A stretch of 37,241 nt of DNA from Octopus bimaculoides. Lineage: Eukaryota. Made by a program: the position numbers and the translations under genes. The stretch covers positions 30,859,832 through 30,897,072 of the forward strand of contig NC_068997.1 in the NCBI RefSeq assembly GCF_001194135.2, read 5' to 3'. Of this stretch, positions 2,053 through 26,029 are shown in pieces (position 1 is the stretch's first letter; every line of letters starts with the position of its first letter). The notes under the pieces are model-generated. The model was not told the origin of the DNA, ran no database searches, and saw only the letters and a list, made by a program, of their open reading frames with translations.

Positions 2053-2674
2053 TAATTGTAGTTTTTATATTTAAATAAGGTGCAAAATATTAATCACAGA
2101 TACTAGCATTCACATATTTCCTTTGTACAATCATACCCATACACACATATACTCAAACAGAATTGATATACTGTCAGATTCTTCTTTTCAGAGTTGAAGT
2201 TCCCCATCCTATTTCCATTGCGTAGACACACACACACACACACACACACACAAACATTCACATACTCCCTTTTACATACACATACATATACTCTCAAAGA
2301 GTTGAATGGCTGATTTTTCACCCCTTCTCTCTTTATTCTTCTATCTTCCTTTCTCATTCATATGTTGAAAACAAAAGATACACTATGCGTTCTTTGCCAC
2401 TTCCTTTCTCACATGACTATTACTTTCTCTCACTCTCTCAGTCATGGCTGTTACTCTCACTACCACTCCTTCACTGTATTAATATTTTCTCTCCTCTCCC
2501 TTCACTGATACTACTTATTCTCTTTTCTGTCCTACTGATTTACTTGAAGGTGGTCATTTTGTAAACAAAAGAATTTCTTTTTCTTTTTATTTTCGTTTGA
2601 TATTATCATATTAAATTTGAATTTTAACATTTCTTACGTTTTAGTGGATAATATATTGGTTTTTAGTTTTCGAT

Positions 2675-3676
2675 GGATCTTTTCCTTTTGATGGGCAGAT
2701 CGAGAAATTATTTTTTTGTAACTAAACACTTTAAAACTTTGGATGCTAGTAGAATGTGTCATATAAAACATCTTTTACCCTTAGCGTTGTTGAGAAAAGT
2801 TTCTATTTTCGAAGTTATTTCGTGTTAAAGTTGTCGTATTTTAGTAATTTCAACCAATCAATGACATCTATTGAGCTGAAAAAGTTACTGCTGTTGTTTG
2901 TCAACAATAAGTTCCGGTGGTATATATTTCGTTTGTCACTGTTATTTATGATATATTTCATCTCAGTTACGTTCGTATGAATAAACGAATCTATCTGGAG
3001 CAAGTTTACTTCACGACACCACCATAATCGTTCGTGCATTTCTACTTCTTTTAGGTTTTTTTCTTGTTTTTCAGCTATTATTTTCGAAGACTCCCCCACC
3101 CCATTTTCTCGCAAATTATTGTTTGTTTTAAAGATTTTTTGCCAAAAACCCAGCTTTTCGGATACGGATATTCCTGAAAATTGCCAAAAATCGGAATTTT
3201 AACATTTTTGCCTCCCTTACCTCTCCCCTTCCAATTTCTTCGTTTTTCACTTTTTCCGTAACACTCATCCTAAAGCCCCAACCCTAACTCTAACCGTAAC
3301 CCTAAAACCGTAACTCTAATATTGAATCCCTAACGCTAACCCTAAACTCTAACCCTAACCCTAACCCTAAAGCTAAAACCAGTACAAATGTACGAACGAT
3401 GTCATAAATAACAGTGGCAAACGAAATATACACCGCCGATAGTGGTTGACAAACAACAGCAGTTATTTTATTCAGCTGAATACACGTCATTGATTGGTTG
3501 AAATTACTAAAATACGACAACTTTAACACGAAATAACTTCGAAAATAGAAACTTTTCTCAACAACGCTAAAGGTAAAAGATGTTTTATATGACACATTCT
3601 ACTAGCATCCAAAGTTTTAAAGTGTTTAGTTACAAAAAAATAATTTCTCAATCTGTCCATCAAAACGAAAAGATCC
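2675..3676. mobile_element. Non-autonomous long-TIR (foldback) DNA transposon, GGATC family copy 1
   Basis: Ends GGATCTTTT...AAAAGATCC. Arms of ~290 bp (2675-~2970 vs ~3390-3676) are reverse-complementary. Exact 8-bp TSD TTTTCGAT at 2667-2674 and 3677-3684. Confidence 0.92.
3256..3378 (+). repeat. Degenerate (TAACCC)n telomere-like tract inside GGATC copy 1
   Basis: Perfect TAACCC units mixed with TAACCG, TAACTC and CCCTAAAA variants. Confidence 0.9.
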
Positions 3677-4364
3677 TTTTCGATTTTTAATTAGTTAACC
3701 CTATTATTTTTGTAGTAAGTTAAATTTATCTGAATCGTAATGTTAAATAAAATGCTGGGGTATTTTTTTTTTATATATTTTTTCTTGTTTTGAACGGCCC
3801 GGCGTTCTGCTAATTTTCCTTCTATCATTATTTGATTGTTCGTTCCTGTCTTGGCTATTAAAAGGTCTTTTCATGTTTTTTTTGCTGGTCGTCATTATTC
3901 ATACCAATATGTAATTTCTGACGAAGAATGTAATTTTATTTCAAGAAGAGTATTCCGCTTTTGTCTTTGGAATTAATTAGACTCCGAAGCAATATGTAGA
4001 ATTTATATTGGCTTTATACCAACTTGGATTATGATTTAACGATCGTCAACACCTATATTTTTCCCTTTCCTTATACTTTATATAAATGAAAGTATATGTA
4101 TAATTATAGTCACTTATACAAATATATATACATATACACATATATAAATATATAGATTCAAGCATAGCTGCATGGTAAGAAATTATTGCCTGAGCGTTAA
4201 ACTAATACATCTGCTTGTTTACACACCCGTCTTCGTATTTTTTTTTTTTTTTTTTTTTTTGTAAATTCTCACTATATATATATTCAGGTCAATATGGTAC
4301 TTAAGTTTAGGCATCAGAAATAAGTATAGTATTATACATACAGTTTCAAAATAAGGTGATTAAA

Positions 4365-5743
4365 ATCAAAATAAGCAACAAAGATATCCAAAGTTAATGC
4401 TGTACGCTCATTTCATGCGACTCCATTTAATAAAGCAATGTGAACATTACATCAAATATAAAATGCAGAGCAATCCTCAGCTGCACAAAGATATAGAAAT
4501 CTAATGAAATTACATTTCTACAGAAGAACATATTTTTATAGCTACATTTAAACTTGTTCCATTATTATTTTGTACTTAACTCATGTTAGTTAATACAAGT
4601 TCCTGATAATTTAAGATAGTGCAATCTAATTAAATTAGTACATAACTATCATGTTCTCTATTAATTGTTTAGTTCACTATTATATTCTATCTTAATTCCA
4701 ATCGTTCATTTTATCAGTTTATTAAACCTTGAGGGGTCCATCATTATATACCATGTAAATCCTATGTATCAATTCTTTACATTAACTATATAATAAATTG
4801 TATATCATGTGTCCTTTAAATGATATTAGATATATAAGTTTAATCTTAAAATTTGTGTCCAATATATATAAAAAAATTTAAATTTCACATCTTATCTATG
4901 GTTCCTTATATTAGTGTAAATAAGTCTAAATGTACTTTACCATAGCATTTTAAATTAATACCACTTCATGGTTTTTGCATTCTGCATTAATTGTTTAGTT
5001 AGATTATTATACACTATTTTCATTTTATTTCATTATTATTTTATAATTAGCTTTTATTTATTCACATATTAATTAAGCAAATATTGGTATCTCAAGTATT
5101 TCAAACTTAGTATATGTAAAACAATACTGATACATTATTCTGATTAATGAAAACTATGAATAACCATTTACTGTATCTGTACACAATATAGCAACTTTAT
5201 TTTATATAATTTTGTCCTAGGTGCCTTATGATAATACTTCCCCTGCTCCATTATAAAGTGGTCTGCTAGCAGGGAAACCCCCTATAGTAGTTTGTCACTA
5301 AACCCTAAGAAATTTTATAACTATGTCATCTACGTTTAGTGTCTAGACTGTTTACCCCTTTCCCTTCAAAGAAAATGCAATTGCCCTCTTAAGCTTTGAA
5401 TCACTAACTCTGATAAGATGGTCCATAAATCAGAAACAAGAAAAAAAACAAAAAAAATCAGTGACAGTTAAAGATCTGCTTAGAATTATTTACTAGCCTG
5501 TATGGTCTGGCTAAGTCAAAATAGTTTTTTGTATTCTTCCTTTCTACTTTGAGAGTTTAAATGTAGTTATAAAAATATGTCCTTCTGAAGAAATGTAATT
5601 TCATTAAATTTTTATATCTTTGTGCAGCTGAGGATTGCTCTGCATTTTATATTTGATGTAATGTTCACATTGCTTAATTAAATGGAGTCGTATGAAACGA
5701 TCGTACTGCATTAACTTTGGATATCCTTGTTGTTTATTTTGAT
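4365..5743. mobile_element. Long-TIR non-autonomous element (~190-bp arms, ~1-kb AT-rich interior)
   Basis: 4365-4554 (atcaaaataagcaacaaagatatccaaagttaatgc...ctacatttaaact) is the reverse complement of 5554-5743. No TSD resolved because the right flank is (TA)n. Confidence 0.8.
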
Positions 5744-5744
5744 A

Positions 5745-23802: not shown

Positions 23803-23872
23803 CTGAAGAAAAAAACAAGCAGATGTTTGTACTTGTTGAACTCATCGTTTCCTCACCTAGCAACAGTAGCAG
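23803..23872 (-). other. Candidate 70-nt exon
   Basis: taattttcag acceptor and CAG|gtatgg donor. Open only in phase 0 (LLLLLGEETMSSTSTNICLFFSS). Confidence 0.3.
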
Positions 23873-24043
23873 CTGAAAATTAGGGTGAAGGTGTTAGGTA
23901 TAAAAAACTGCATGAGATATCTATTGCAGTAACCTTGTAAAAGACTGAGGGTCATAGATATATAAGGAAATCTGTTGAAATTTAACAATATGTAATATCA
24001 CAAAATAAAGCAAAGTTAATATAACTAGTGGGACCCAAGTTAA

Positions 24044-24590
24044 AGATCTTTTTAGTTTGGCTGACAGATTTAAAATTATTATTTTTAACTAAACAGTTTG
24101 AAACTTCGTGTACTAGTGTGATTTCTCATCCTGAACATGGTTTACTTTCAACAGTTTTGGCAAACTTTCATATTTTAGAAGTTATTTCGTGTTAAAGTTG
24201 TCGTATTTGAGTAATTTTAATCAATCAAGGACGTGTATTCAGCTGCAGAAACCTATTAATTTTTGCGATAGTAATTTAAGAGCAATAATTTCTGGATCAT
24301 CTATACTAAATGTATTTTCAATCACATGTGGAGTAGAGATGACCCGGAAGTTGTTGCGCTTCAGTTACTATTATAAACAGCAGTAGGTTTCTTCAGCTGA
24401 ATACACGACATCGATTGGTTAAAACTACCCAAATACGACGACTTTAGCACGAAATAACTTCTAAAATACGAAATTTTGTCAAAAATATTTAATGTAAACC
24501 GTGTTCAGCGTACACGAGTATACGAAGTTTCAGACTGTTTAGTTATAAAGCAAACAATTAAAAAATGTCTGAACCAAACTGAAGAGATCC
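24044..24590. mobile_element. GGATC family copy 3 (short, no telomere-like tract)
   Basis: Ends AGATCTTTTT...GAGATCC. Exact 8-bp TSD CAAGTTAA (24036-24043, 24591-24598). Has the same subterminal block (gaagttatttcgtgttaaagttgtcgtattt) in inverted orientation on both arms. Confidence 0.9.
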
Positions 24591-26029
24591 CAAGTTAATT
24601 CCACGAAATGAAAATTATTCAGAAAGAATAGATGTTTTAAATTTTGTAGTTTTCTTAAGTGTTGCTTTCTTTAAATATATTAGTCATTCGTCTACAATAA
24701 TTTCCTCACGTCTCGGCCGATGTTGTCTTTTTTCTCTTTGTATTATACCTTCTCACTGCTCCACTCTAATCCATGCTCTATATCTGCCTATCCTTTCTCA
24801 AGCAACTTGCAACCATCTTTTTTTGTGAATTTATACTTTAGGCTAAATTAACCCTCATAAACAAATGTTAATTTTCAAGCGTGCAGACGATAAATAATAA
24901 CACTTAGGCACATGCGTTAAGCGATAGGCACTATAACAAATTAGTTCAATAAAAACAATACTTTTCACTATCAACATACCACCACCACCACCATCATCAT
25001 CATCACTATAGTTTTCAGTAACAAAGCTATTTCATTTCGGTTGTTTGTCTATATCTACTTTTTGTTGCTGTCGGTGTATCTCTGTTCTGACTATACAAAC
25101 ATTCTCTGCTTATCTCCCTATCTCATTCTTTCTTTTTATGTCTCCCTCTCCCTCTCTCTCTATCTCAATCTCTCTGTCTCAAAATAACTACCTCCCTTGT
25201 CAATTTCTGTCTGCTTTTCTTTAAGCTCGCCACCAGAGCATCAACGTCTGCTAAGTATTGTATCCAAGTTATATCCTTTCCTCTTTACCTTTCTCTTCAG
25301 CTTAATTTTAGCCACATATAAGCTATTCCTTTACCAGCCTAACGTTCTCCATCATTTTCCATTCACCCTCTTTCTCTCTCCCTCTTTTCTCTCACCATCT
25401 TTTTCTATTGCTCTTCAGCTACCCGCGTGACGCATTTTGCCTTAGTGTATTGATACTATACATCTTTCGTTACTTCTTCCCCTCTTCTTTCTTCTCTACT
25501 CTCTTTCTCAATCCATCCGCCCCATCTTTCACTCTTTCCCCAACTCTCATTCACTCCACCTGTACCTCTCTATCTAATTTAAGTCCAACAAACCAGCGAA
25601 CAAGCACAATTATATATAGATGGCAAAGTTCATATATTCATTTTTTTTTTTTCTCGTTTTAGTCTATTTTCCATATTTTCCCTTTCTGATACAAGCCGTT
25701 ATAACATTTTTAAAGCAAAAGATAATATTGTTTTACTGATTTCATCGATCTAAACTATGTAAACAAACATACGGGTGCGCACTAACATTCACACTGCCAC
25801 ACATATGCATATGTATGTATGTGCATGCATAGGTGTTTATAAATATACATGTGCATGTGTAGGTGATGTATACACACACACACACATATATATGTATNNN
25901 NNNNNNNNNNNNNNNNNNNNNNNNNNNNNNNNNNNNNNATATATAATGTGTGTGTGTGTGTGTGTGTGAGTGAGTGTGTGTATGTGTGTGTGAGTGAGTG
26001 TGTGTGTGCGTGTTGCTCTTCCGTGTTCA

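Follow-up and report, generated by a model that had tools for sequence, protein, structure and literature searches.

A foldback transposon family of Octopus bimaculoides, probably moved by a Merlin transposase, with a telomere-like tract as inherited cargo

Merlin transposons, eukaryotic relatives of bacterial IS1016/IS1595, have been described as carrying terminal inverted repeats (TIRs) of 24–462 bp that begin with 5'-GG, as generating target-site duplications (TSDs) of 8 or 9 bp, and as encoding a transposase that bears a DDE_Tnp_IS1595 domain; Octopus bimaculoides has unusually many Merlin proteins, 191 in number (PMC8101967). Other small transposons carry tandem repeats. In the parts of the two reports drawn on here, DTC84 of the clam Donax trunculus (PMC3879986) is a tandem-repeat miniature inverted-repeat transposable element (MITE), non-autonomous, with an internal short array that moves along with it and whose copy number differs from insertion to insertion, and Tetris of Drosophila virilis (PMC4079207) is of the same array-carrying type and is also a foldback element. 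Short, degenerate TTAGGG arrays at internal chromosomal sites are known from vertebrates as interstitial telomeric sequences (ITSs), for which a review names transposition by mobile elements as no more than a possible source (PMC6410037). Here we describe a transposon family with likenesses to all three systems in a stretch of 37,241 nucleotides of O. bimaculoides DNA (contig NC_068997.1, positions 30,859,832 to 30,897,072; hereafter the window, to which coordinates refer unless a scaffold is named). The window holds three copies, c1, c2 and c3, and a fourth, b1, was found on another scaffold. We consider it likely that they represent one old family of non-autonomous foldback MITEs with long TIRs, moved probably by a Merlin transposase, in which a telomere-like tract is inherited as cargo.

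All three copies in the window are flanked by exact 8-bp duplications. Copy c1 (2675–3676, 1002 bp, GGATC...GATCC) has its left arm at 2675–2959 and its right arm at 3394–3676, and lies between two occurrences of TTTTCGAT (2667–2674 and 3677–3684); copy c2 (18163–19003, 841 bp, GGATC...GATCC) lies between two of CGTTATGA (18155–18162 and 19004–19011); and copy c3 (24044–24590, 547 bp, AGATC...GATCC) lies between two of CAAGTTAA (24036–24043 and 24591–24598). The chance of such an exact match at eight of eight flanking positions is ~3e-5 per element at this base composition. The coordinates and sizes in the original prediction, which had been made from the letters alone, and its three exact and mutually different TSDs were recovered on direct reading; it had also given every copy the termini GGATC...GATCC, which is correct for c1, c2 and the right end of c3, while the left end of c3 reads AGATC. 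By eye, a 9-bp duplication (CCAAGTTAA) is possible for c3, but we rejected it since the termini would then be out of register with those of the other copies, and for this reason the first base of c3 is read as a probable G-to-A change.

The evidence that the tract moves with the element came from the fourth full copy, b1, which was found on O. bimaculoides scaffold LGKD02092233.1 (8016 bp; locus L003) at positions 5575–6284 (710 bp, GGATC...GATCC) with its own exact 8-bp duplication, TAACGTTG. Copies c2 and b1 occupy different loci on different scaffolds and are 92.6% identical over 692 aligned bases (Kimura two-parameter distance 0.078). Their arm-to-tract junctions match, and the left tracts of the two copies correspond from variant to variant (TTCGGG, TTTTAGAG, TTAGGG, TTAC/GTTTTAGGA, TTACGG, TTAGA/GG, TTATGA). 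Because the same variant hexamers are shared by copies at different loci, the tract was degenerate already in the common source copy of c2 and b1, and has been transposed with the element as inherited cargo. The same junction is present in c1, a member of a subfamily ~80% identical to c2, and the tract is therefore at least as old as the common ancestor of the c1 and c2 lineages. The right tract of c2 is ~92 bp longer than that of b1; this gain is a local expansion by slippage or unequal exchange and not the work of telomerase, since telomerase would add perfect repeats. Two processes are thus combined in the family: transposition passes on a seed tract, whose length then changes in individual copies. 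The position-by-position sharing of a degenerate tract between c2 and b1 supports the proposal that telomere-like sequence is spread by transposition of the family. Rather than most copies lacking the tract and TSD length varying at random, the tract is present in three of the four full copies (c1, c2 and b1) and the TSD is 8 bp long in all four.

In c1, the tract (3253–3380, minus strand, reading CCCTAA on the plus strand) adjoins the right arm. Tandem Repeats Finder (TRF) gave it a period of 6 with 15 copies and 70% matches, and it is degenerate, with seven perfect hexamers and a longest run of three. On the left side of c1 there is a junction remnant, ATCGTTCGTGCATTTCTACTTCTTTTAGG (3028–3056, plus strand), with no tract behind it and ~200 bp of unrelated filler (3060–3252). 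Since this remnant matches the arm-to-tract junction of b1 at 24 of 29 bases, both arms of c1 once had the junction. The original prediction had the same arm sequence joined to tracts in c1 and c2, and comparison of the junctions agrees: the segment of c2 at 18474–18510 matches the reverse complement of c1 at ~3361–3400, with 24 of the 29 bases before the tract in agreement. The same junction is thus found at the right arm of c1, as a remnant at its left arm, at the left arm of c2 and in b1. The earlier description of c2 can be refined, as this copy holds two tracts in inverted orientation. The left tract (18494–18562, plus strand) is TTAGGG-like, with the G-rich strand leading from the arm into the centre, and the right tract (18585–18706, minus strand; TRF period 6, 19.5 copies) is CCCTAA-like and inverted relative to the left one. 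Within the right tract an 18-bp higher-order unit, TAACCATAACCCTAACCC, made of three hexamers, is repeated about six times (TRF period 18, 6.2 copies, 84% matches). The palindrome formed by the arms of c2 continues through both tracts to a small central loop, so that the G-rich strand runs from arm to centre on both sides. TTAGGG is the only cephalopod telomere motif determined experimentally, and this was done in an octopus (cited in PMC13218726); as the window is octopus DNA, the motif of the tracts is that of the host telomere repeat.

The relationship of the copies does not depend on the tracts. Compared with the window by BLAST, each copy gave matches to its two relatives and between its own two arms, and to nothing else. 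The inverted repeat of c1 comprises 209 nt at 96% identity, or 286 nt at 92% by BLAST, and that of c3 177 nt at 82%. In the outermost 230 bp, the two arms of one copy are 96% identical in c1, 84% in c2 and 82% in c3, compared with 74–81% between the c1, c2 and c3 lineages, so that we take the family to be old and divided into subfamilies. A profile of the arms recovered all six with nhmmer, at E values from 1e-56 to 1e-79 (2e-79 for both arms of c1; 2e-56 and 3e-69 for those of c2). Alignment of the six arms with MAFFT gave a conserved terminus, GGATCTTTT, and a strongly conserved subterminal block of ~70 nt, GAAGTTATTTCGTGTTAAAGTTGTCGTATTTnnGTAATTTCAACCAATCAnTGACGTnTATTCAGCTGAA; a 30-nt degenerate pattern taken from this block matched six of six arms and nothing else in the window, with 0.00 matches expected. 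The shared subterminal block and long TIRs claimed at the outset were borne out by alignment, pattern search and nhmmer alike, confirming that the copies are transposons. Foldback architecture is clearest in c3, which is a near-complete foldback with a loop of ~24 nt and a self-complementarity of 77% over its whole length; as a single strand it was predicted to fold into one hairpin of −150.9 kcal/mol (z = −23.7 versus shuffles).

A further feature of the arms is a second, internal GGATCTTTTC motif, located ~220–240 bp from the end in the left arms of c2 (at 18401) and b1. It is followed by a repeated inner-arm segment, motif and segment together taking up 18401–18477 in c2 and L003 5792–5869 in b1; in c2 the segment gives a second nhmmer match (profile positions 203–280 at 18414–18477), and the right arm shows a degenerate counterpart of the motif. 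The internal motif may be a subterminal transposase site or the trace of a nested or recombinant origin of the subfamily.

The family resembles Merlin transposons and their MITEs in the terminal 5'-GG, in the 8-bp TSD and in a TIR length within the published range (PMC8101967). GGATC is present at seven of the eight termini of the four full copies and in a terminal fragment on L003, the TSD is exactly 8 bp in four of four copies, and the arms measure ~230–285 bp at 82–96% identity. Octopus Merlin sequences from the supplement of PMC8101967 were aligned and used as the query against a protein collection, and one match, P0137 (O. bimaculoides LOC106883699), was traceable to DNA, whereas no gene record turned up for the Merlin-like protein P0133 of O. 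sinensis, for P0126 of O. bimaculoides or for an ORF of the window. P0137 lies on L003, the same scaffold as b1 and the only octopus Merlin locus examined. The Merlin open reading frame (ORF; DDE_Tnp_IS1595, PF12762) occupies L003 positions 3223–4056, and 547 bp after its stop codon, at 4505–4603, there is a ~100-bp family terminus ending ...AAAAAAGATCC (nhmmer E 6.6e-7). This terminus faces outward, on the strand where an element containing the ORF should have its right end; it shares 91–92% identity with the left arms of c2 and b1, compared with 73–82% for the other arms, and its similarity to the family ends ~100 bp inward, as at a TIR boundary. The preference for Merlin over Mutator-like elements (MULEs) or hAT in the original prediction is supported by the fit to the published features together with this one-sided link between gene and terminus, and the mobilizing enzyme is most probably a Merlin-superfamily transposase.

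That enzyme would have to be supplied from elsewhere, since, unlike Merlin itself, no copy described here encodes a transposase. No ORF with a match to a protein family lies inside c1–c3, and the translation of the single frame that is open throughout the conserved arm block had no match at E ≤ 1 in a set of 5.8 billion proteins. As had been proposed, the window holds no transposase of this kind: tblastn with octopus Merlin transposases as queries gave no sign of Merlin coding sequence in it, and none of those long ORFs that were scanned against Pfam matched a DNA-transposase family. An Rfam search of the whole window returned no family at the gathering score, which speaks for arms that do not come from any known RNA gene. 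The conserved block had no match in JGI metagenome contigs or GTDB genome contigs, as expected for animal DNA, and no family copies were found in the ENA contigs L001 and L004.

Several observations weigh against the reading of the family as Merlin-mobilized carriers of an inherited tract. Copy c3 has no telomere-like tract, in a sample of only four copies, and no copy of the family was found in 20.7 kb of O. sinensis DNA (locus L002). Every perfect dimer of the telomere hexamer that the window contains lies in c1, in c2 or in a fourth telomere-like tract (33260–33431, minus strand, AACCCT × 27.5 by TRF) situated between the N gaps 32119–32931 and 33782–34293, and nhmmer found no family arm beside this fourth tract at E ≤ 10; a single weak Smith–Waterman alignment to the conserved block occurs 160–280 bp downstream (z = 7.8 versus mononucleotide shuffles), and the tract is not demonstrably part of the family. 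Upstream of the Merlin ORF on L003, neither a left end nor a duplication was found; the sole match, 16/18 at 2677–2694 by a (GT)n run, is not significant. Among the loci examined, no element with both family termini around a transposase was found, and at the Merlin locus L004 no clear TIRs surround the gene. Finally, the terminal fragment on L003 is as similar to c2 and b1 as c2 is to b1, and it could be a truncated MITE that is there by chance; as family copies are locally dense, we give this a small but appreciable probability.

The last of these points leads to the alternative that survives best, namely that it is by chance that a Merlin gene and a family terminus are neighbours on L003, and that the true autonomous partner is some other element or is extinct. 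It would explain why only one side is present and why the fragment is no more diverged from its relatives than they are from each other, and a full copy does lie 970 bp further along L003. Nevertheless, the orientation of the fragment and its distance from the stop codon are those expected for a right end, and its similarity to the family stops where a TIR boundary would be. Moreover, L003 was the sole octopus Merlin locus examined, so that the association was not selected from among many. We therefore regard a chance association as unlikely.

Elements of the hAT superfamily also make 8-bp duplications, prefer the target nTnnnnAn and have short TIRs with a terminal YARNG motif. Were the family a group of hAT MITEs, the 8-bp TSDs of all four copies would be accounted for, and TTTTCGAT does fit nTnnnnAn; however, two of the three other duplications do not fit it, the termini read GGATC and not YARNG, the arms, at 230–285 bp, are far longer than usual hAT TIRs, and it is a Merlin gene that adjoins a family terminus on L003. 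An origin among hAT elements is thus improbable, and we judge an assignment to Mutator-like or Foldback elements (MuDR superfamily), or to P- or Galileo-like foldback elements, to be equally so. MULE termini often start with G, the TSDs of MULE and Foldback elements are typically 9–11 bp, and the termini of P and Galileo begin with CA. The long arms and hairpin architecture are indeed reminiscent of these groups, which are known for very long inverted arms, and terminal G residues are common in MULEs, but the duplications are exactly 8 bp in four of four copies instead of 9–11 bp, the termini begin with GGATC instead of CA, and the adjoining Merlin gene on L003 again points elsewhere.

It is highly improbable that the tracts were born independently at each locus, as microsatellites from a TTTTAGG seed in the arm or by telomerase repair of breaks at fragile hairpins. 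In favour of such births, the last arm bases ahead of the tract are GTTTTAG, close relatives differ in the length of the tract, the right tract of c2 grew by its 18-bp unit, c3 is tract-free and the tract at 33260–33431 is without arms. Against them, the variants TTCGGG, TTTTAGAG, TTACGG, TTAGAG and TTATGA shared by c2 and b1 at different loci contradict independent birth of the seed tract, c1 has the same junction at ~80% subfamily identity, and by our own calculation a hexamer microsatellite drawn at random would coincide with the host telomere motif in only ~0.3% of cases.

The presence of the tract inside c1, c2 and b1 and the inheritance of the array between c2 and b1 place these copies among tandem-repeat-containing MITEs. 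The family is therefore of a known kind, a tandem-repeat-containing MITE or foldback element, and its unusual part is the host telomere motif as internal repeat. In the parts of the reports considered here, the internal repeats of DTC84 and Tetris are described as satellite DNA or tandem repeats, whereas those of the octopus family are the host telomere hexamer, arranged as two inverted tracts head to head at the tip of a hairpin. The near-complete foldback and the telomere-like cargo likewise set it apart from Merlin elements, for which neither is reported in PMC8101967. The comparison with vertebrate ITSs formed by break repair or fusion differs in that the octopus arrays lie between transposon ends with TSDs and have been copied from locus to locus; an array of that origin sits directly in sequence that is otherwise unique or orthologous and is not bounded by transposon ends, and the tracts of c1, c2 and b1 are so bounded. 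The head-to-head orientation of the tracts in c2 and b1 is that seen at telomere–telomere fusion points. It is possible that a repeat consensus already catalogued for octopus covers the family.

On the preferred reading of the family as non-autonomous Merlin-type elements with inherited cargo, the copies would move by cut-and-paste transposition with a transposase supplied in trans. The enzyme would recognize the GGATC termini and the conserved subterminal block, which has a putative role as binding site. Integration would proceed by a staggered 8-bp cut that is filled in to give the 8-bp duplication, a step for which the duplications are direct evidence. One lineage (c1, c2 and b1) bears TTAGGG repeats where each arm ends on the inside; at the hairpin's tip the two tracts meet in head-to-head orientation, with their G-rich strands running from arm to centre. 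Once inserted, a tract would decay by point mutation and change in length locally by slippage or unequal exchange, and c3 would be either a tract-free lineage or a deletion derivative.

As to how the tract was first acquired, a speculative origin, which we hold to be rather unlikely, is that the tract-bearing lineage was born at a chromosome end. A transposon end that was broken and capped by telomerase, or that lay beside a telomere, could have been turned into a palindrome by head-to-head fusion of the sister-telomere type or by fold-back replication. The product would have the structure arm-(TTAGGG)n-(CCCTAA)n-arm, and its two outward-facing transposase sites would make it a new mobile element. 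The observed head-to-head order of the tracts, with G-rich strands directed inward, is the one expected if half an element, capped with telomere repeats, underwent such a fusion or fold-back duplication.

The surroundings of the copies are AT-rich eukaryotic DNA of ~33% G+C, rich in microsatellites and retroelement fragments; they show no evident host exon and look like intergenic or intronic DNA in which transposons abound. The earlier count of two N gaps in the window was wrong, as there are six, all of them outside the three copies. The gap at 14768–14777 falls within a (GA)n run, which continues on either side of it. The gap at 16363–16372 is in the tail of a Penelope-like retroelement (15197–17093), and the 45 bp before it recur after it with 44 of 45 bases identical; because this stretch is doubled here and occurs only once in the O. 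sinensis paralogue of the element, the gap looks like an unmerged contig overlap. Neither of these two gaps has a bearing on the transposon finding. The Penelope-like element is bracketed by 129-nt inverted repeats (15197–15325 and 16965–17093, 98%) and contains a GIY-YIG-type ORF at 15394–16134 (plus strand, 246 aa) with hundreds of relatives, the best named one being an O. sinensis protein at 77% identity. The element is also present in the O. sinensis locus L002, at 82–86% nucleotide identity.

Other repeats were noted in the window. Four further MITE-like or foldback inverted repeats, at 4365–5743, 34797–35263, 28801–29298 and 16557–16894, have arms of 190, 115, 110 and 89 nt, respectively, at 85–94% identity, and are unrelated in sequence to the GGATC family. 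An interspersed repeat of ~180–200 bp, SINE-like in size (SINE, short interspersed nuclear element), occurs at 8489–8686, at 4579–4747 and 19447–19645 of L002 and at 7617–7811 of L003, with 72–84% identity among the window and the O. sinensis and O. bimaculoides loci; like the shared Penelope-like element, it marks the window as octopus DNA. An ORF of 147 aa at 13836–14279 (minus strand) shows a weak resemblance to the helicase portion of Helraiser, a Helitron transposase (PDB 7lcc, E = 0.004), has no Pfam match and is probably a Helitron fragment. Weak Pfam matches to zf-RVT at 12483–13052 (plus strand) and RVT_1 at 19437–19736 (minus strand) mark coding fragments of retrotransposons, and reverse-transcriptase motifs like those of long interspersed nuclear elements were seen by eye at 26840–27187 (plus strand) and ~35300–36400 (minus strand). 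A G+C-rich 62-bp tandem repeat at 37030–37241 (3.4 copies, 88% matches) runs past the end of the window.

Internal telomere repeats are usually explained by chromosome fusion or by telomerase acting at breaks. Here, one defined transposon family moves a degenerate TTAGGG tract between loci, with TSDs as proof of insertion. If the chromosome-end origin were true, Merlin amplification would account for a large share of octopus interstitial telomere-like sites, with possible consequences for fragility or for the binding of telomere proteins. For cephalopod genomics, the finding means that internal TTAGGG matches are not to be taken as fusion scars, nor used naively as telomere markers in scaffolding. 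The family offers a concrete set of elements for measuring which fraction of interstitial TTAGGG sites is transposon-borne, and it is a candidate non-autonomous partner of the numerous Merlin transposases of O. bimaculoides.

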